DNA of 63,595 bases, filler included, from Reticulomyxa filosa (Eukaryota > Protista > Foraminifera), in NCBI GenBank assembly GCA_000512085.1. It is 14 parts of 14 records of this genome, joined end to end, with 100 filler letters (N's around TTAATTAATTAA, not from the genome) between each part and the next. Parts side by side here need not be neighbours in the genome. Positions count along the whole stretch, not along the records: positions 26,482 to 38,582 come from ASPP01008671.1; 13 more parts are not named here. The stretch is one strand, 5' to 3'. The position numbers and the translations under genes were made by a program. A model generated the notes under the pieces. That model ran no database searches. It was not told where the DNA came from and worked only from the letters and a program-made list of their open reading frames with translations. The number at the start of each line of letters is the position of its first letter. Position 1 is the first letter of the stretch. Below, in pieces: positions 26,482 through 38,582 of this stretch.

Positions 26482-26519
26482 AAAAAAAAAAAAAAAAATT
26501 AGTATCATCAGCAAATATT

Positions 26520-29500
26520 ATGACGAAACCAACCTCAATGTCGGCAACACCACCCCCGACTGTGTTGCAAAAGAATTCTAAACACATGCAAGCATTTGCC
26601 AACGTAGCGAATAATGCTAGCAGACAGGACCGAGTAATTGTGCACAAATTTCACGCTCGTCCGAAGGGCCATGAAGGAGACACGAAAGAACCTCGATCCG
26701 ATTATGACGATGGTCATGAAGAAGACGATGATGCTGATGATGAGGAAATTGATGGAGATGAAGGCAAAGGAAAGAACCTGCATTATCAACACCATCATCA
26801 AGCCCCGATTAAATTGATTCGCTATCATACCGCACCAGAGTACGTAACGCATCAAGTGAGTGATGATGCTATCACTCAACAACCCTCAGTCACGGTACAA
26901 AACCAGCCAAAGATGTTTCGTCATGGAGTTGGAAATCGAACCAGTCCATCTCATCCTTTTGATACGTATTCATGGTTCGATCCGATTCCTCAATTCAAAG
27001 AATATTCCAATTTTTATGAAGACACGTTTGATGATGGGCAGACTTCTCCACTTCCCGCTACGCAATTAGTTACAAACAAAAAAGTTTTTTTTTTCTCCCT
27101 CCCTTTCCTCCCCCTTTCTTACTTCGAAAATTTTCAAAACTTTTTTTTGTCTAAGTTTGCAAGACTGTGAACACAATAAATGAAAATAAATTATACAGAC
27201 ACCAACCTTCAATCGATCTCAACCCACTTTATTGAAACAACGCACAGCACCAGAGTTTGGAGGAGACGGTAATTTGTATATGTCTGCCTTCAAGGTCACC
27301 AGCGCTGACACTTTAGAAATGACAGCACTGCAAAGAAGGCAGTGGACAATTCAACAGCAACAGCAACATCAACATCAACAGCAACATCAGCATCAGCATC
27401 AGCATCAGCACCAGCATCAACATCAACAGCAGCGCCCCGGTTCGACTCTTGGAACAGGTTATTCCACCCATGCGCTGCAAACGCGACCGAATCGACTTGG
27501 TCCGGTGTCATCGCGCCCGAGACAACATTATCAACATCGGCCCGTTATGCACTCGCCATCGTCGACTACCAATAGTAACAACAACAACAACTCTCGCAAA
27601 ATGGAGCGTATTCATCACATTGCCAAGTTTTGCTTTACTTTACTTTTGGATGATACATGTGTATGTGTGTGTGACATGATTTCGATTATTTTTCCCACTC
27701 TATCAAACAATGATAGAATAAACAATGGAATAACCATTCAAATGCTATCGAAATTGTACGAAGAAAATTATGGCGAGGTATTGCCAGTAGACACGCAGTT
27801 GCTCAAAGAACTGGTACAATCTCCACGATTATTGCTCATGTCTCGAAAAGATACAAACGCGATGATGATATTTTATTCCGAGCAACACTTTTCGGATGTA
27901 CTTGTCGATATCTTTGCTCTGGCGCGAGAACAGCAACAACAGAAGCAACAGGACGAAAAGGAACCTTTTCATGAGATGGACGACGGAGTAATGACGATAC
28001 TTGTGTTTATAAGAGAGTTAGAAGCCTACTTGCATACCGACCTAAGCCAAGTGGACGTAATCAATTTCTTGAAAAGATATCGCGGAGTGGAGCTGATCGA
28101 AGAGGATGAAAACGATCCCATTCGTAACTTGATCCGATTGATCCCAACTGGAGAGTGCACTGTCTTGCTTGGCAACTTGTCGTTGGCCGTTACCGAGTCC
28201 GAAATTCGTGAGCTGTTGCAATTGATCAATCCGCACTGGACAAAACTGCGTATTCGCATTCTCAAAGACAATTCATTTGCTCATGTGTACATTGATTTCT
28301 TGTCTCTTAATGAAGCCGAAACCGCCATGACTCAAATCAAACGGAACAAGTTTTATACTCCACAAATACGCGTGGAACTTGAAAGCACTGTTGGTAATGT
28401 TTTGTTTTTTAAAAATTCTTCAAATTTTTTTCTTGTCGTGGCTATGTTTTTTTTTTTTGAAAAAAAACACTGCAACATAACAACAGGCCAAAAATCTCAA
28501 TTGAGTGACACAAAGCCATTGCTATCGAATATGACGAGCTCTGTTCAAGGTTTGCAGCAACGTGAAGAGCTTCCTAAAGAGGTCGGACAATCACTTGAGA
28601 AAAAAGAAAAGACAAAAAAATGATATCGAAGCGACAGAAGAAAAGGAAATGGATGAACAAGTTTGGCAAGGCCATGGAAATGCATCGCAACGACCCATGA
28701 AAAGCCATTCCAATTTTGATCGAATCACCCAAAATGTGTATCAAGTCATTCGTGCGAATGGTGGTCGCCTGCTCATGTCACAAATTGCGTCCAAATACAA
28801 AGAGATGTTTGACAAACCGCTTGACTTCGATGGCAATCCAAAGTATTTTGTGAAGATGGAACGATTGCTGTTATTGAATTGCAAAAACGAGTTTTGTAAT
28901 CTTTTTTTTTTTTTTTAAATCATACAAGTATACGTACACATGTACACTATGATGTAATATTTGTTATGTTTTCATTTGTCACAGTTCGCAAGATGTGGCT
29001 CTATATTATGCCCCACAGCCAGCACACAAATTGGTCGTCTCTATATTAAAGAAAAATGCGAAAAATTCGGGCACAGGAATGCCTATCAATGAGTTTCGGG
29101 AACAGTTGGAAAAACGAATGGGCTTGAGTTTAGACGACTGCGATTTAACCGATTTTTTGATGCGTTGGCGCTTTTTATCTGTTCGTGAAAATGTAGATAG
29201 CACAAAATCAGTGTTATTTACCCCTCACAATGGATCGACTGTGTTCTTTGGAAATTTGAACGAGTTATGTACTGAAGAGGACATCCGCAAGGATTTGGAA
29301 AAAGCAAATCAAAACTGGAAACACTTACCTGTTCGATTGAAATCCGGAAAAGGCTTTTCTTATGCTTTTGTGTTTAGAAATCGTCTCCTTTGCGACACAC
29401 TCTTTTGTTTTTTTGTTTTCATGACACGTTCCACAAACAAGCATTCATTCCTTTGTTGTCAGAAAGCTTGTACATACCTATAAATTACACATTCCACGAA

Positions 29501-30097
29501 ATTATCATAGCGATTTTCCAACACGTAATGATGCAAGACGTGCAGTCGAAATATTTGATGATAAGGCTGCATTTAAATCGACAAGTGTTTCTGCTGATAT
29601 TGAGGTCGTTGGGCAAAGAAAAAAACCACAAGACAATTCAAATGTTTCCACTGGCTTTCTTTCCACTGTTTGCGATCAGCGCCACGTAAATAACCAAACC
29701 AGCCACTCCATAAATGAAAACAGCACTGATACATTGGCCAGTTCGAACAAAAAATTGTCTCGCACAAAGGTTACGGTTTATTTGGGAAATTTAAAAAACT
29801 CGGTCACCAAACAACAAATCCTGAATGCCCTGGCAGAAATTCATCCAGAATGGCGTATTGTAACGATGCGATTGAATGTGAGAAGTGGCTGGAGTCATGC
29901 GTTTGTAGGTTTGTTATTGGTTGTATTTTGTGTTTCATGCGAGTTACTAAAAATGCATTGTTCTTTTTTATGTGTATTATTATTTTACGCTGATAGATTT
30001 TAACAGTGTCCATGAAGCAAAAGAATTAATCAGTTATTGGCACAACAGTCCTCATCCGTTGACTTTCACACGTTTACGTTGTGAAATCTCAAAATAA
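26520..30097 (+). CDS. Multi-exon RNA-binding protein: low-complexity Q/H N-region, about 4 LOTUS/OST-HTH-like domains and 3 RRMs
   Basis: RRMs: TVLLGNLSLAVTESEIRELL..HVYIDF, TVFFGNLNELCTEEDIRKDL..YAF|DF and TVYLGNLKNSVTKQQIL..HAFV|DF. Winged-helix motifs: GITIQMLSKLYEENYGEVL, GVMTILVFIRELEAYL, GGRLLMSQIASKYKEMFDKPLDF and GMPINEFREQLEKRMG. The stop TAA is at 30095-30097. Confidence 0.75.
27350..27432 (+). repeat. Coding (CAR-CAY)n QH dipeptide / poly-Q repeat
   Basis: QQQQQHQHQQQHQHQHQHQHQHQHQQQ. Confidence 0.9.
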
Positions 30098-30799
30098 TAA
30101 ATATATATATAATTTGCACACGTTTTTTCGATTTTTTTTTATTTTATTTCTTTTGGCCATCCAAAGAAACAATCACTTTCTGTTTTTGTTTATTTGGTGG
30201 AATCTGCATATTTCTATTTTCAGCGAAAGCGACAGATTGTAATTGGATATTTTCAATCCAATTTTTGATGTGTACATGTTTATTTTGATTTGTTTCGAAT
30301 TTGTTTGTTTTTTTTATTGATTTGTATTCGTATAAGTATTATTGTGCTTATACTACGTCATGCCGCTTGTGTTCATATTGTCATTTGCTTATCATTGCTT
30401 TTTGTCAGATTCGAGGAATTTCTTTGCTTTGGAGTGTAACCATTTTCCCTGATTTACACGTGACAATAGTTTAATTTTGTCTGAACGATTCAATTTTCTT
30501 TTTTTGTTTCTTCTCTCGATTCGTGTTATATTTTCGAGCAACTTTTTTTCCTAAATATGGTCCAATTAGTCCAGAATTTTGGGCTAACGTGAGCACTGAC
30601 AAAAGATGCAAAGCAAGAACAGATGACCATTTAAAGTGTCACGATTATCGAAAAAAAGTATTGGTAAAAAGGTAAAATAATCATAGACAGATGCTGCTTT
30701 AATGGATCTGCAAAAAAAAAAAAGGCAACAATCTCTTTGTCACAAATGGAAAAAGTTTTGAGTCGCTATTTTTTTTTTGCTATATCAAGAAGAAAATCA

Positions 30800-31434
30800 T
30801 TATCTTTTGCGACTGGCTTCCTCATACTTGCGAATGTCTCGATAAACTCTTATTATTGGAGGTGTAGACTCGTCGGTTTGAGTTGGAATCCGATGTTGAG
30901 TGCCTTGTTCTATGACACCATCGCATGAAGCTGAGTCTTCTATTTACACCCATGTAAAGAGAGAGAAGAAAGTACAGCATCGCCTGAGATTGTAATATTG
31001 AGAAACAACAAATCAAAGCAAAGTTGCAAAATTCAATGCATACCAAATGTAATTGCAGAAATTGGGATTTGTTTTTGTTGATCGACGATAATTTGAACTT
31101 TATTAACAATTTTTCCAAACCTGGAAAAATAGTTTGTTAAGTCTTGAATCTCAGGGACAAATTCTCTGTGAAATGAACAAATTATGGTGTTATCAAATGC
31201 GGTATGTTTTTTTGATTTTTGATCTTCTAATCCCAAGTAACTGGCCGGTATGTATCCTTTTCGATTGTTCCCCACTTCCACATATGCCCAGCCGTTTAAG
31301 TCGGGGTCCAAGTCTTTCACTAGTACTTTTTCCTCTCTTTTTACACTTAGTTCACTGCTGCTTGGTTCTCCAGCGAAATCATATATAACTGTCATCCACA
31401 CCCCCTCGCTCTCGTTTTTTGATCTCTCCATCAC
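30800..31434 (-). CDS. SH3 domain + RRM protein (intron about 30940-31042); start unresolved
   Basis: SH3 VIYDFAGEPSSSELSVKREEKVLV...GWAYV...KGYIPASYL, followed by the RRM DLTNYFSRFGKIVNKVQIIVD...SAITF|EDSASCDGVI...HRI...IIRVYR. Confidence 0.8.
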
Positions 31435-31689
31435 TGGAACAGCAATTTGTGTTGGCCCCTTTTTTTGTTTCTACTTTTTTCGAAAACAAGTTGTTTTTAA
31501 ACTAGTTAAAAGTAAGTGTAATACCCTGTAATGTTGTAATAAAATATGTCTTATCCGGTTCGAAAATAACAAGCAGCATCTTTAAAATGAATGATTTGAA
31601 TAGAAGCGAAACTTACTGCACAACAAAATTGTTTATTACTGTTTTTATTCCAAAAAATGCTCTAATAAATAAAAGTGTTTGCAATTGTA

Positions 31690-31846
31690 GAAAAAATGTT
31701 ATTTTTATCCACCTAAAAAAATCGATTTCATATTTAAAACTGCAATAATTGTAATATTTCAAATAGGATTATGTTGTCTTCATAGAGAATACAACTATTT
31801 TCATAAAATACTGTTTTAGATGTCCAGTTTTTTTGCAATATTGTAA
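31690..31846. repeat. Degenerate copy of the MITE-like repeat
   Basis: ATTTCATATTTAAAACTGCAA...GTTTTAGATGTCCAGTTTTTTTGCAATATTGTA resembles 40478-40621 and 42060-42146. Confidence 0.45.
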
Positions 31847-33582
31847 TATTTCTACTTTATTATTGCAAATTTTATAAAATTATCTTCTTTTCACTTTTCA
31901 CCGAGTTTATTAACAGTCACCTAGGTGCACAATCTTATGAATCTACATTTCCTCTTAGTGTGCATATTGATTATCAATATTATACTTTTTTACGTAATTT
32001 ATATTTATTTTTTATAATAAATTACCCAAAATAACAGGCTAATTCACGTTTTAAGAACAGAAGCAATCAAATTTCGAAGGTCAAGTAAAAGAGGCATCAA
32101 AATAACAATTTGTATGTATTTTAGTTTCATCTTTTAAAAGGTGCTTGTGTTTACTTAGTCGTAAACAGTAACAAGTTAGAAGATTTAGGACAACTTTTAA
32201 AACAGCATACAAAAATAAAATTTCTTAAATTTCACTGTAATTATTACACCAAAATAAACCAAATTTCGAAATCGAGTCAGAGTATCGGAATGAAAGATTT
32301 CATGTTGTTTTTTGTTTGTGCAGTCATACATGCTAAATTGATCACAGTCTCAAAAATTGCGTAAGTATTCACCTCCTTGTTACTGTACGTTATTGTATCA
32401 TTCAACGCTTGTATTGCAACGCACTACCAGTGTTACTAAAGCAAGAAAGTACTTGAACCTTTGACCCTAAAACTACTCCTTTTTCGCTTTCACCAAAAGT
32501 TTTTATTTTCTTCTTGTGTTGTGATTGATAATCATTTTCTTATTTCATTTATTTTGGTTTTTTGAAAACTAATTTCAGTAATGAAATTACTTTCGTATTA
32601 CACTTAAATAGTGCCACTCTTCTGACAAACTGGACCGCAAATATAGAAAAAAATGGTAAAAAGATTAGGGAAGACGAAAATCTCCCCGTCATTATTAATC
32701 AGTAAATCACATTTATAAGCTTGAATTGTCGACATGTTTTTCGTTTAAGTGTATGAAGTGCGCCAACCTGCACAAAATGTAATAAGAAAGTTACTGGTAT
32801 GAGATAAGAAGTATGTGGAAAAAGAGTCCCAAAATTTCTTCCAATACAGAAAATCTACCCTTGTAAGTATCTTTCAAGTGTTTTAAGACTTTTGCCCCTC
32901 TGTAGGAAGTAGCGATCAGAAAAACGTAATATCAAGTTAGAAACAAAATACAATAAACAAAATGAAAGAAAGACACAAACCAACAAACAAAGGAAACATA
33001 TGTAAAGATGATTATTTTCACACGAAAGAAGACTTGATGATCTATTAATAATTCGGAAATAATTCTGATTGAAATGAGGTTATTTTTAACTATAACTAGT
33101 CATATTTTATTGTGATATTTCGCTCCTGTATTAGTTATGACCAACAAAAGAGCGGTTTCCAGTTATGAAATTGTGGACAAATCAGAAAGGCGCCAAATTT
33201 GCACACCACAAAAAATAACCCCATCCCTCAAAAAAAAAGAATTCATAGAAAATAAAAACAAACAATGACATGTAAGGCTGCAATTCTGGTTTTTTGAACT
33301 CAAAAGAAATCACAACTTCGTCGTAAAGACAAAAAAAAAAGAAAATGGCATGAAAGGGATGTTACACATGAACTTTAAACACCAAAAAAACACCAAAAAA
33401 AAAACAATAAAGAAAAGAACAATAAACAACCCTCAATACGGAAAGAAAAAGATGCGTGTCTTGGAGAGAAACAAAGGAAACAAACTCCAAGGAGCAATAT
33501 ATAAAATATAATAAACAAAAGAAATGAACAAAGTTAAACAAAAAACAAATAAAAAAAGTAAAGATGGAAGAGATATTTGAAA

Positions 33583-36500
33583 TCAAAACTTTGTCTCAAC
33601 ATGGTCATAATCAAGGCCATTATCACTTTCGTTATCCGTGTCGTTATGCGTTAAAAAGTGAAAGTCTTCGGGCTTGATATCTTGATTGACCAGATATTGG
33701 CCCAATCCTCCGCCGCCATTCTCCTCACCCTGTTTTTTAAAAGATTATATAACAAACAAGAACATCACGAGTATGAAAAAAATTAGGAGCAATGCAAGCA
33801 ATAAAAATAATAGAGTTTAAAAACATACGCTCACCTGAATGTCTTCTAAAAGCTTTTCAGAGTGTTGGCTGTGCGAAGCGTTATCCGCGATATGAATTAA
33901 CGAGCGAAAGGATGAGTTTACAGTTCGAGCGAGCGCTTGCAAGCCACGAGGTGTGGTGTGTGCACTCATTGACAAAGCTTTTTTTGATATCTTTGGACTG
34001 TTTGTTTCATGAGTTCTTTCAAAATTGACAGGTGCAGTTGCCTTGGCACGTCGTAGTGGCTGTGCATGGACAGGTTTCGACTTGACCACTTTGGCCAATG
34101 CAGCGGAGTCATGAGTCATTGCAGGAGGAGCACTCGACTCTCGAACGCCCTCTTCTTTGGTCTTGTTCTCTTCTTCCACACTGTCGTTTTCTAGCGACTC
34201 CACGTCCATCTCCGACAGTTCCGAATGTTGCTTGGTTGGGAATATCTTGAATGGTGCGTTGGTGTTCAAGTTGTGAGGATAATCAAACGATTGCATCGAT
34301 ATTGGTGTAATCTGTCCACGCTTTTTACTCTTTTTTTTTTTTGTTTTTTTTTTGGATATACGTAGTTTACATTACCAATGGCAACACAAACAAAGCATAT
34401 TTATACTGCATTGTGCATACACATATATAAAGCAGGGCTCATGTCACGCTCATTCGCAAAATCAAAAGAAAAAAAAAGAAAAAATGAGAAGTGCTACCAA
34501 TATAATCCAACACTCGGTCATCACATATTGTATCATATATATGTGTATATAAATGTATAAATCTACACGCAACTACATCATCATCATTATAATTTTTAGC
34601 GGATACACTGCGAGACAAAACCACTGGTAACGAGGCTTGCACAAAATAATCGTCATTATTGACTTGTGTGGAAAGAGTCAAAGTGCTTGTATTATTGGCC
34701 GTTCGATGCAAATGGACTTCATCTTCGTTTTTTTGTCGTGTGGCTGTGCTCTTGGTTACTTGACTGTAACTTCTGGCAGAGGACGGATGTTGACTTTGTC
34801 GGGAAGGCTGCAGCTGAGTGATCGCAGAAGTGCTATTGGTAACTAACTTGGGTTTGAACTCTTTCCATTGCATAGTTGCATCCATCGTGTAAGCACGTTG
34901 TTCATGAATTGATTGGCAGCCATTGTTTTCCCTATTTTTTTAAGTATGAGCAATTTGAGAAAAATTGTGGTTTGTTTTGACAGAGAAACGAAACAATGGA
35001 TCGACAATATCCAAACAATCATGGATAGGCTCATGGGATGCATTTGCAGCGTCTTTGACCTTCAATGGTGTTGCAGGATTTGATTTGGACTGATACTTGG
35101 CCTGGTTTTTGATTGGTGGCAATTTGATGTCAGCGAGCTTCACACTGGCAAAATGACTCAAATGTAAATCCGCTGAGAAATATTTGTTGTTTTGTTTGTT
35201 TGCACCGACATCAACAATCCGTTTCAGCGGAATCGAAGACGGAAGTGGTAGCGGCAAATCAATTTCATCATCACCGTCACGATTTTCCTCCTCGTCCTCT
35301 TCGTCCTCATCATCATAGCTTTCTTCATCTTCATATTCGTCACACAACGCCATTACCAACCCAGTGCCATTGTTCTTGTTGCTGTCTGTGGGTGCCAATT
35401 CCAATGCTTCCATTTCTAAATTTATTTATTTTTTTTTTTTTGGCAACGTTTGTTGTATACACCCAAACAAACAAACAAACAAATAAATATGTACCTGCAA
35501 ATGTGTATGTATATGTTTGTAAGTATAATGTAACTGCCAAAATTACTTTGCAAATTAGACTCTTTCGAGTGACCCACAGCATGGATACGACTTTCCTTTT
35601 TCGGAGGAATTCTCACCGACCTCTGAATGTCCAGCACTCGACTATCGCGCATTTCGCGACTACTAACACGGTCTTGCAAGCCCAGCAGTTCGCTGGCTTT
35701 TGAGTACTGTATTTGCAGCTCGAGAGCCATTTGATTGATTGAAATCGGGACCATTTCGCCGCTGTATTTTGCGGTTAGACGATTCATTTGAGCACTAGCA
35801 TTAGTGCTATTGACCTCCTCCTCCTCCTCTTCTTCTTCGTCATCATCTTCCTCATTCACGTCTTCGTCTTCTTCTTCCAAAGTGTCTTTTTTTATTTCCT
35901 CCTCATCAGTAGTGTTCGCCTTGGCCAGGGTCTCATGATCAATACGCCGCTCTGGTGGGTGGACAGGTGGCACAGCGAGGATCTCGACGCTTTGAAGAGG
36001 ATTGGATTCCCACGACGAATTGGCAGTGGTGATCAGCTTGGGAACATTCTCCAAGTGCTCGGGCTCATTCGGTTTGGGAGGTCGTCGGGCGATGGGTAGC
36101 ACAGTGTCGTTCCATTGATTGGAAAAAAACACACCGACGTTGTAATGAGTGCTTCGACTTCCAAAAGAAAATTTACTAGTTACAAAAGAAGGTTCGGAAA
36201 GAGTGGACGGTGAGTAGACACGTCTCTGACCGGACCTGTTCCCATGTAACAATTGCGACAGCACCACGCAACAGCCGACCTCACTTGACTTACACTTCAC
36301 ACAGCTTTGCGTGGATGCGGATGCAAAACAGTTGCATTTGTGATATAACTTCCCTCGCTTTTGGAACAACAGGAACAAGCAGATGTTGCCTGCTGTCAGA
36401 TCGAACTGCGTCAGCGCAATGCTCGAAAAGTCCACACCTTGCGAAAACAAGTACACATAACTTATTATGCTGAACAATGCCTGGAAAAAGTATATTGTCA

Positions 36501-37369
36501 AATGTCTGTGCAAAAATTTTTGCGTTCGTTTTCGGTCTTTTTCGCACATGTGACGTAGCACTTGGTCTAATGTATGCCCATAGCCCTTTTTTTTTTTTTT
36601 TTGTATGTTAATTCGGTTTTTTTTTTTGGATGGCAGGAGAGAAGCTTAGCAACGAATTGCTCTACGTATACTTATTTGCAATTTGGACGTTTTTTTTTTT
36701 TTAAACGACTTTTTTTATTTTTAGATCACCTTCCAAAAGAGCATCACAAATCCAAAGCCATAAATAAAATCGCCCAATAACAAAAACAATAACAGTTCCC
36801 AAACTGGCACTGTGTAATGACACCATTTTTCGTGCTCACGATAACCTCCACTGGTTGTAAGCGTTAGTATCAAGCAAAAGACTGCACAGTTTGCGCCCTA
36901 ATAACACAAAGTTTGAATTGATGCAATTAATTTTTTTTTTATTTGTGTTTTGTTGGCTTTTAACTACTATATATGGAGCTCGTTTGACGACCCAACGCAA
37001 TTTGGAATGTAATACCGATGCCACTGCTCTGCCACGGATAACATAAAAGAACCAGATGCAAAATTTACTTATCCATCTACATATCAACCCAATAAGTGCC
37101 ACATTTCGACATAACTCGTTCAATTTTGTGTTCGATACTAAAAAATTGTAATTTAGGTTGTCATATTCAGATAATACAATATGTAGGACAAAAAACAATG
37201 TGCTACTTGTCCATGTCATTATCATAGACACCGTTACTATTAAAAACGCTGCAGGCACCTTGGTGCATTGGACTTTTCTTAAAAAGAACAATTCAACCAA
37301 CCAAACCAACAATAACAATGTATCTACACCATAAAATAAGAAGCAGGCGTAGACTTCAAAACGTGGCAT
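33583..37369 (-). CDS. Seven-transmembrane (GPCR-like) protein with a very long low-complexity cytoplasmic tail, multi-exon
   Basis: Seven hydrophobic segments: YACFLFYGVDTLLLLVWLVELFFL; AAFLIVTVSMIMTWTSSTLFFVLHIVL; CRNVALIGLICRWISKFCIWFFYVIR; APYIVGANCAVFCLILTLT; WELLLFLLGDFIYGFGFVMLFW (needs one homopolymer frameshift near 36828); TIYFFQALFSIISYVYLF; IALTQFDLTAGNICLFLLF. A Cys-rich segment and acidic/S-rich exons follow, ending ..DHVETKF* at 33583. Joining all the tail exons into one gene is inferred. Confidence 0.65.
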
Positions 37370-37719
37370 TTTCAAAACTAATGACTACGACGAGTACAAC
37401 TCCAAAAAAAGACTTCAAAGTTGCGTTTTAGACGTTTTTTTCTCTGTTTTTTCCTTTGGAGCCGTGCTCCGTTTTTGTACGAGTATTGTGTTGGTTTATG
37501 CCGACACCATTCCATTATATACACAGAGACACCAAAGGAACAGAAATGAAGACGAAAACCAAAGTTGGACGATAATTCCACATTTGTGCAATATGTTTCT
37601 TGTCGTAACCACGTGGCTGTCTTAATGTTTGATTTTAGAAAAATAAGTATACAACGCTGTAAGTTTAAAAAATGTTTTAATTTTACCTTTCATATTAATA
37701 GGAACTCATATAAGTAAAA

Positions 37720-38542
37720 ATGTCGACCCTAAGTATCACCTCATCTGGAAGCATTGTGTTGAAAGATTGGTTTTTAATCCCACAAAAAGGCGAATTTGTG
37801 AAAAAATATGGCGAAGCAGACGCTTCGGCCGTTCTTCTTTTCAACGACAATAACAAGGGAGAACCAATCGGGAGCATTCGTTACAAGAGTATCTTGGATG
37901 TGACAAAGACAGATTTCGGAGAAAAAAATGGCGATACTTTTCCGATTTTTAACGACTATAACAAAGTATTGGCAATTTGGAAAAAGGATCGTTCCGTCTA
38001 TTATTTGATCTTTGCGGACAAAGAAACACGACAGCATTGGGCTGACTTTCTCAAGGGGAAAGCCGACCCAGGCAGTTTTCGAGGGAAAACATTGCAAGTG
38101 CCGATCATGACTTCGACTAATCCAACCAGCAAAAGTTTTGTTATTTTTACTTTGTTTTCATATTTTTGCGTAATGTTTAAGTTTGATCTTTTTTTTTTTT
38201 TTTTTTGAAAACAACAAAAAACACGAACATATTTCACATAATAATCCAACTAACTAGACGATGGAAAGTCAAAGAAAACAATACAATTTCCCATTCCAGG
38301 TGTAATATTTCATCATTTTACCAATCGCATATACCGTGATCTCGTGAATCAAAGCTATGTCCGTCCATCACGACAAGATGCAACAAACAATGCAACAGAG
38401 AATAAATATGTTAATGTCTTCATCTCTCCCATCGGATCGTATGCGTTGTTGAACATCTTGTGGTGTGGAGCTGAAGTTGGTTCCAAGACTTATCAGCAGT
38501 TGCAACAATATTTGGCCAATATGCCAAAATATCAAGATCTCA
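37720..38542 (+). CDS. PH domain fused to a serpin-like N-terminus (exons 37720-38134 and 38258-~38542; truncated by contig end)
   Basis: PH: LKDWFLI...VKKY...VLLFND...PIGSIRYKSI..V...YYLIFADKETRQHWADFL. The phase-1 intron 38135-38257 joins in frame to FTNRIYRDLV...NVFISPIGSYALLNILWCGAEVGSKTYQQLQQYL, matching the serpin hA-s6B-hB-hC consensus. Confidence 0.7.
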
Positions 38543-38582
38543 GTTTTTGAAAGATCTTTTTTTTGTTTGTATAATAAATATG

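Follow-up and report, generated by a model that had tools for sequence, protein, structure and literature searches.

Gene structure at the end of contig ASPP01008671.1

The stretch of DNA analyzed here (the window; 63,595 nucleotides made up of parts of the Reticulomyxa filosa genome) contains contig ASPP01008671.1 at positions 26482-38582, comprising 12,101 bp of AT-rich sequence (GC ~37%) with intron-containing genes. The last gene on this contig appears to join a pleckstrin homology (PH)-like domain to the N-terminus of a serpin and is the subject of this report. Exon 1 (37720..38134, plus strand; 415 nucleotides, phase 1) provides the start codon, the PH-like domain, and the first part of a linker, and corresponds to amino acids 1-138 of the public protein RFI_11898. 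Its ATG at 37720 is preceded by an in-frame TAA 9 nucleotides upstream. Intron 1 (38135..38257, plus strand) is 123 nucleotides long, T-rich, and interrupted by in-frame stops, with the GT at 38135-36 and the AG at 38256-57. Exon 2 (38258..38542, plus strand; 285 nucleotides) encodes the linker motif FPIPGV, a putative helix A, a family-specific insertion of ~16 residues that precedes NVFISP, and the serpin segment s6B / helix B / helix C. Its translation contains ...FTNRIYRDLV...NVFISPIGSYALLNILWCGAEVGSKTYQQLQQYL... (also read as ...FPIPGVIFHHFTNRIYRDLV...NVFISPIGSYALLNILWCGAEVGSKTYQQLQQYL...) and is followed by a GT at 38543. The first 40 nucleotides of intron 2 (38543..38582, plus strand; donor CA/GTTTTT, phase 1) complete the contig.

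A preliminary description of this DNA had proposed these coordinates and an in-frame splice between the two exons. The ATG, the phase, and the GT-AG boundaries were all confirmed in the sequence, and RFI_11898 (ETO25241.1; UniProt X6NGX8; here P0001) uses the identical junction, 38134/38258. This public protein is a 235-amino-acid “hypothetical protein” with no Pfam domain on record; the spliced form was taken only as P0001, and the other pieces were searched separately. No ATG precedes the serpin motif in exon 2, and the tail of the unspliced exon 1 open reading frame (ORF), ..FVIFTLFSYFCVMFKFDLFFFFF, is read-through of the T-rich intron. Ten GT-AG pairs keep the frame between exons 1 and 2, and an alternative in-frame acceptor lies at 38299. 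The residues KSKKTIQFPIPG, encoded between the acceptors at 38257 and 38299, are kept in two relatives, and therefore the acceptor at 38257 is the better choice. At the 3' end, the stop codon of the public model (TGA, 38548-38550) lies six bases into intron 2, such that the model reads two codons into the intron. Since this TGA falls inside intron 2, the 235-amino-acid model is best explained as an apparent truncation caused by the assembly break in that intron. Only serpin profile positions ~1-55, or ~15% of the domain, are present on ASPP01008671.1.

Relatives carry both domains in one reading frame

An exhaustive search with P0001 against 1.84 billion representatives returned three matches besides the query itself: P0002, P0004, and P0003. 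P0002 (307 amino acids) matches amino acids 13-234 of P0001 across the exon junction with 48-50% identity (E = 1.3e-63), and exon 1 is homologous to its N-terminus at this same level of identity. P0004 matches amino acids 124-233. P0003, a bacterial repeat protein of 802 amino acids (E = 3.5e-16), was rejected as a relative; it matches amino acids 19-56 of P0001 (38 residues) six times, and the score of a short motif (..DE.KGEP.GSI..) is amplified by these repeats. Word searches with exon 1 and with amino acids 139-235 recovered only RFI_11898 itself, and metagenome scans with an alignment of the head (A1) and one of the body (A4) yielded no relative.

P0002 is encoded by a 2.3-kb contig that was found in two Joint Genome Institute (JGI) samples, 3300030740 and 3300030741. 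Two substitutions and the lengths of a few homopolymers distinguish the two versions, L002 and L004. Neither has introns at any of the four R. filosa intron positions, and both read straight through the point homologous to the intron 1 junction. Their first ORF comprises the PH domain, the linker, and the serpin N-terminus, and P0002 and P0005 each hold both parts within one uninterrupted ORF. Further downstream, L002 matches serpin profile positions 81-217 and 245-370 (48 bits each), while the serpin body of L004 is a single 366-amino-acid ORF (Pfam, 101 bits, E = 1.1e-28, positions 82-370). The downstream core, including s3A, s5A, the reactive-centre loop, and the s4B/s5B signature F..[DN].PF...[IL], is present and colinear in L002 and L004.

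P0004 is encoded by L003, a 1.7-kb genomic contig of assembly GCA_024449935.1. Here, a single ORF runs from the C-terminal helix of the PH domain across the linker and FPIPGV as far as NVFISPIG...HYQSL, with no intron at the position of R. filosa intron 1. This ORF ends at a phase-1 GT directly after a Leu codon, which is the position and phase of the GT at 38543. Reading the DNA further upstream, we placed the PH exons of L003 at 644-708, 770-910, and 973-1072 (MSKVPLHSGWVLAPSKGEFLKK..., ...IAIWKTDKTIYYL...RLWAHAVRDALK). The linker is conserved on both sides of the exon junction in the relatives (KTL.[IV]P ... FPIPGV). Both domains, their order, and a single reading frame are shown in the relatives. 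The central proposal of the preliminary description, that one protein combines a PH domain with a serpin N-terminus, is borne out by these single ORFs in contigs from two further organisms and by the lack of a start codon of its own in exon 2.

The only break in L002 and L004 is a frame change at a shared run of ten A residues (L002:833-842 and L004:832-841), which lies in an acidic Lys/Glu-rich insertion. A further homopolymer difference, A9 versus A8 at L002:1447-1455, interrupts the serpin ORF of L002 but not that of L004. In the R. filosa contigs L005 and L006, described below, the acidic-insertion region is in a single frame. Because the R. filosa copies are in one frame and L002 and L004 differ at another A run, we took the apparent A10 shift to be a homopolymer error or a polymorphism.

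The N-terminal region resembles PH domains

The sole Pfam match of exon 1 was PH (PF00169; 37792..38052, plus strand; amino acids 25-111), as the preliminary description had anticipated, with a marginal E value of 0.039 and 14.9 bits relative to a curated cut-off of 25.1 bits. The match includes the Trp of the C-terminal helix (RQHWADFL). The orthologue P0002 scored 23.7 bits (E = 7.2e-5) against the same cut-off, and in exon 1 and P0002 alike, PH was the only or the best Pfam family. An NCBIfam scan gave no match. We then used alignment A2, which contains the three homologous N-termini, as a profile against PDB sequences. Sixteen of the 17 matches were PH or EVH1 domains (E = 0.04-1.3), among them ARHGAP25, pleckstrin, centaurin, ROCK2, TAPP1, and Ena. 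An RRM identity for exon 1 (PDB, E = 0.026) was dismissed as a chance match; the family profile returned PH and EVH1 domains instead. In the ESM-Atlas model of P0001, residues ~4-128 superimposed on ten PH-containing clusters with template modeling (TM) scores of 0.62-0.69 over 100-120 residues, and AlphaFold models of low confidence displayed strands followed by a helix at 101-111. The helix Trp, found in RQHWADFL in the window and in RLWAHAV in L003 and replaced by Phe in P0002, aligns to the helix Trp of 1v89. The PH fold is a beta-sandwich of seven strands with a single C-terminal helix as its cap. On the sequence matches and the Atlas model, a PH-like fold is fairly well supported for the N-terminal region.

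Recruitment to phosphoinositide membranes, which the preliminary description had attributed to this domain, fared less well. The basic K-Xn-(K/R)-X-R motif of the beta1-beta2 loop, as judged by eye, is not conserved in A2 (PQKGEFVKKYGE / PHKSKLEERYAE / PSKGEFLKKFCV), and P0002 is acidic at this position (LEERYAE). On the sequences at hand, phosphoinositide binding by the PH-like domain is unsupported.

Exon 2 encodes a putative serpin N-terminus

For exon 2 alone, Serpin (PF00079) was the sole Pfam match, covering profile positions 16-54 of 370 (38395..38517, plus strand; ...NVFISPIGSYALLNILWCGAEVGSKTYQQLQQYL) with E = 0.05-0.07 and 12.8-13.4 bits, relative to a curated cut-off of 27 bits. The region 38290-38542, in which the preliminary description had seen a serpin N-terminus, did return a serpin match, though a marginal one (E = 0.07). 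When exon 2 was compared with PDB, the three best matches were CrmA chains (residues 8-48, E = 0.08), and a three-sequence profile of exon 2 brought CrmA to E = 0.0014, with serpins in register accounting for 7 of 12 matches; clade B serpins and ovalbumin aligned at residues ~21-57. By ESM-Atlas features, serpins made up 29 of the 30 nearest clusters (top score, 0.96; 185 shared features). The N-terminal s6B / helix B motif (N-[IV]-F-x-S-P ... L ... GA) is in register with solved serpins. The agreement of these searches, and the colinear position of this stretch with a full serpin body in relatives, indicate that the serpin match of exon 2 is more than chance. FTNRIYRDLV is plausibly helix A; the Pfam and PDB matches do not include this segment and begin ~30 residues later.

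Two R. filosa contigs begin with serpin bodies

Two annotated R. filosa proteins resemble the serpin body of L004 in word searches: RFI_01726 (P0006; 411 amino acids; “serpin domain-containing protein”; Pfam Serpin, 77.9 bits), with 61% identity, and a “serine protease inhibitor” (P0008), with 68% identity. They begin with MGSWEID and MGCWDID, respectively, the residues that follow ...KYQELN in P0002. In both cases the gene lies right at the beginning of its contig, L005 (ASPP01001713.1) or L006 (ASPP01003416.1). L005 opens with a run of 17 A residues, followed by ...AG/AC ATG GGG. Combining the A left over at 38542 by the phase-1 donor with the AC of L005 would give an Asn codon and the order Asn-Met-Gly-Ser-Trp, as in P0002 ...YQELNMGSWEID. 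Serpin positions 1-60 are covered by none of the bodies, and exon 2 supplies positions 16-54. The serpin core is likewise present on L005 and L006, both of which open with the following exon, while the contig in the window ends at 38582. We infer that L005 and L006 encode the missing serpin body of the PH-serpin family, complementary to the head in the window. Composition and the GC content of third codon positions (GC3) do not discriminate between L005 and L006 as the continuation.

All three R. filosa contigs break in the same homopolymer-rich intron of paralogous or identical genes (38543-38582 in the window, L005:1-49, and L006:1-3), beside long A/T runs. The assembly break is thus systematic and divides the gene family in the public annotation. 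Separately, RFI_01726 contains a 1-nucleotide frame change at L005:625-665 relative to the conserved reading (..NTKT.PF.SD.S.S.ELK..). The public model masks it with a tiny predicted intron, and P0006 lacks 9 conserved residues. Either the sequence is in error here or the paralogue is decaying.

Hinge region and C-terminal tail of the serpin bodies

Against PDB, the serpin body matched zebrafish and human PAI-1, neuroserpin, and glia-derived nexin from s2A to s5B (E = 1.7e-10 to 6e-8). The core motifs I..W, the s3A motif, FPK, the s5A motif, and F.YPF...IFL.GR...P are all present. In inhibitory serpins, the hinge follows the consensus G-T/S-x-A-A-A-A, and small residues at P12-P9 together with Thr/Ser at P14 are needed for loop insertion; ovalbumin, PEDF, and maspin are cases of this rule whose loops do not insert. 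In the four bodies from relatives and R. filosa, all located outside the window, the hinge reads E-M/S/R-G-E/Q-N/H-P/A/T-L-P/S-Q/V/D-N/D, where PAI-1 has E-E-G-T-K-G-S-S-A-T-A-A. Glu or Gln occupies P14, Leu P11, and Pro or Ser P10 (Pro in 3 of the 4 sequences), and the reactive loop is 3 residues shorter than that of PAI-1. The bodies do not conform to the inhibitory pattern of Gly at P15, Thr/Ser at P14, small residues at P12-P9, and a loop of standard length. Because the hinge breaks the consensus and the loop is short, so that it would not insert into sheet A, the serpin part is on balance predicted to be non-inhibitory rather than a suicide-substrate protease inhibitor. The suggestion in the preliminary description of a serpin-fold scaffold instead of an inhibitor fits the hinge of the relatives and of the R. 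filosa body contigs.

As previously proposed, the protein appears to lack a signal peptide: by eye, strand beta-1 of the PH-like domain starts from ~residue 12 in all three homologues, with no hydrophobic leader. Because there is no signal peptide, we infer that the protein is cytosolic.

All four complete C-termini (L004:1900-1978, L005:1380-1450, L006:1340-1384, and the C-terminus of P0007) share a conserved final tail, VKDV..SKW[KR]-C-x-x-F-stop, with the terminal residues CWGF, CCPF, CWSF, and RCCF. The C-x-x-F tail is CaaX-like, with a last residue of the geranylgeranyl type, and as a matter of speculation could be a candidate prenylation site or membrane anchor.

Neighboring features on the contig

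Between the PH-serpin gene and the neighboring gene lies a strongly hydrophobic ORF of 179 amino acids (36836-37375, minus strand), which is not in the public gene list and has no Pfam match. An SH3 exon (31036-31434, minus strand; Pfam SH3_1, E = 2e-7) belongs to an annotated 360-amino-acid gene. Long ORFs at 27232-29483 (plus strand) encode a His/Gln repeat (QHQHQHQH...) and stretches that look RRM-like by eye (VLLGNLSL..., VFFGNLNEL...), with no Pfam match at E <= 0.01.

Discussion

We conclude that the PH-like-serpin family is very probably a genuine fusion, and consider it likely that positions 37720-38582 of the window hold the first two exons, the 5' part, of an intact PH-serpin gene. 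A number of observations count against this interpretation. The Pfam matches of exon 1 and of exon 2 on its own both fall below the curated cut-offs. The case for the PH fold is built from the ESM-Atlas model and from sequence matches that are weak but consistent; the whole-protein predicted local distance difference test (pLDDT) value of that model is 0.60, and the AlphaFold predictions (pLDDT of 34 for P0001 alone and 41 for the PH region with a 5-row alignment) are too poor to use. L002 and L004 could represent either a transcript or an intron-poor relative, the status of transcript being suggested solely by their lack of introns. Both contigs share the A10 frameshift, and the gene may be truly split at this point in their organism. 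A search for R. filosa sequencing runs, RNA or DNA, listed none, and the two exon junctions in this organism are predicted from sequence logic, a public ab initio model, and homology. Lastly, the end of ASPP01008671.1 overlaps with neither L005 nor L006, two candidate bodies stand against one head, and a physical link between the head contig and L005 or L006 is hypothetical.

A small PH-domain gene might simply lie next to a separate serpin gene, the in-frame GT-AG join being fortuitous; a shared frame is expected one time in three by chance, 10 GT-AG pairs keep the frame, and the public model that uses this junction was predicted ab initio. We regard such an artefact as highly improbable. Ahead of the serpin motif, exon 2 offers no ATG, and the tail of the exon 1 ORF is intron read-through. 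Moreover, P0002 and P0005 have both parts in one ORF, P0004 continues past the PH helix into serpin sequence, and the linker is conserved on either side of the junction. It is also unlikely that the window holds a head-only remnant, that is, a truncated paralogue or pseudogene consisting of the PH-like domain and ~95 amino acids of serpin, with L005 and L006 belonging to other copies. The contig does end 40 nucleotides past exon 2, the annotated proteins include two bodies and one head, L005 contains a frame change, and the R. filosa genome is highly fragmented. Set against this, both exons are open and 48-50% identical to P0002 with conservative substitutions, the intron 2 donor has kept its position and phase, and splicing to the L005 acceptor would restore the Asn codon seen in P0002. 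The contigs break within homopolymer-rich intron sequence, as expected of an assembly gap.

A different alternative accepts the fusion and concerns its function, proposing an intracellular cross-class inhibitor like CrmA or SERPINB3 that is targeted by the PH-like domain. In its favor, the N-terminal segment finds its best PDB matches in CrmA and in serpins of clade B, a signal peptide is lacking, and the serpin core motifs are well kept. The hinge makes this quite unlikely: G-E/Q-N/H-A/P/T-L-P/S replaces the consensus G-T/S-x-A-A-A-A. P14 is charged or polar, P11 is bulky, three of the four sequences have Pro at P10, and the loop falls 3 residues short of that of PAI-1.

For the intact, non-inhibitory fusion that we favor, the full product would comprise ~650 amino acids, beginning with a PH-like domain of ~115 amino acids and the linker (KTL.[IV]P ... 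FPIPGV). The rest would be an entire serpin fold, in which an acidic insertion of low complexity follows helix D and the C-terminus bears a conserved tail with a Cys. The PH-like domain may place the serpin module on a membrane or a partner protein, the serpin fold may act as a stable binding or scaffold module instead of a protease trap, and a lipidated C-terminus could serve as a second membrane anchor. As a whole, the notion of foraminifera-type cytosolic, non-inhibitory serpins anchored at both ends, by a PH-like domain and by a prenylated CaaX-like tail (SKWK-C-x-x-F), is tentative and rather doubtful.

To our knowledge, almost all characterized serpins are single-domain proteins whose biology centers on the mobile loop. 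In the full-text library searched, we found no natural PH-serpin or multidomain serpin, only engineered fusions; absence there is not proof. To judge from these searches, the PH-serpin architecture is so far undescribed; the sequences are public, but no record displays it. In the public records, the head had no domain annotation and ended inside an intron, the bodies started from an internal Met, and the one contiguous relative was split by a homopolymer frameshift. An assembly break in one intron on three contigs can hide the architecture of a gene family, which is a lesson for annotation. The conserved PH-like fusion and the non-inserting hinge point to the serpin fold as a positioned intracellular binding module in Rhizaria, a little-studied eukaryotic lineage. 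If true, anchoring at two ends would give the serpin fold a role that is new in the cell, along with its first natural fusion to a targeting domain.

Several known systems share part of this arrangement. CrmA, SERPINB3/B4, and ovalbumin also lack a signal peptide, and CrmA and clade B chains are the closest, at low identity, to the s6B / helix B / helix C segment (NVFISP...L.IL..GA...T..QL..YL), but they are single-domain proteins of ~340-400 amino acids. Compared with CrmA and clade B, the PH-serpin family adds the PH-like domain, the conserved linker, the ~16-amino-acid insertion between helix A and s6B, the acidic insertion after helix D, and the conserved C-terminal tail. PAI-1, neuroserpin, and nexin (clades E and I) are the best solved-structure matches of the serpin body, but they are secreted inhibitors with a canonical hinge, and the likeness is low and confined to core motifs. 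Ovalbumin, maspin, PEDF, and HSP47 resemble the family in keeping the serpin core (Pfam, 101 bits in the body described here) together with a hinge that deviates from the inhibitory consensus; no specific kinship to them is detectable, and they carry no extra targeting domain. Canonical PH domains, such as those of ARHGAP25/KIAA0053, pleckstrin, TAPP1, and centaurin, share the order of elements and the aligned Trp of the C-terminal helix, whereas the PH-serpin family scores below the Pfam cut-off and has no conserved basic lipid-binding motif. Against A2, EVH1 domains, which likewise have a PH-like fold, score almost as high as PH domains do.
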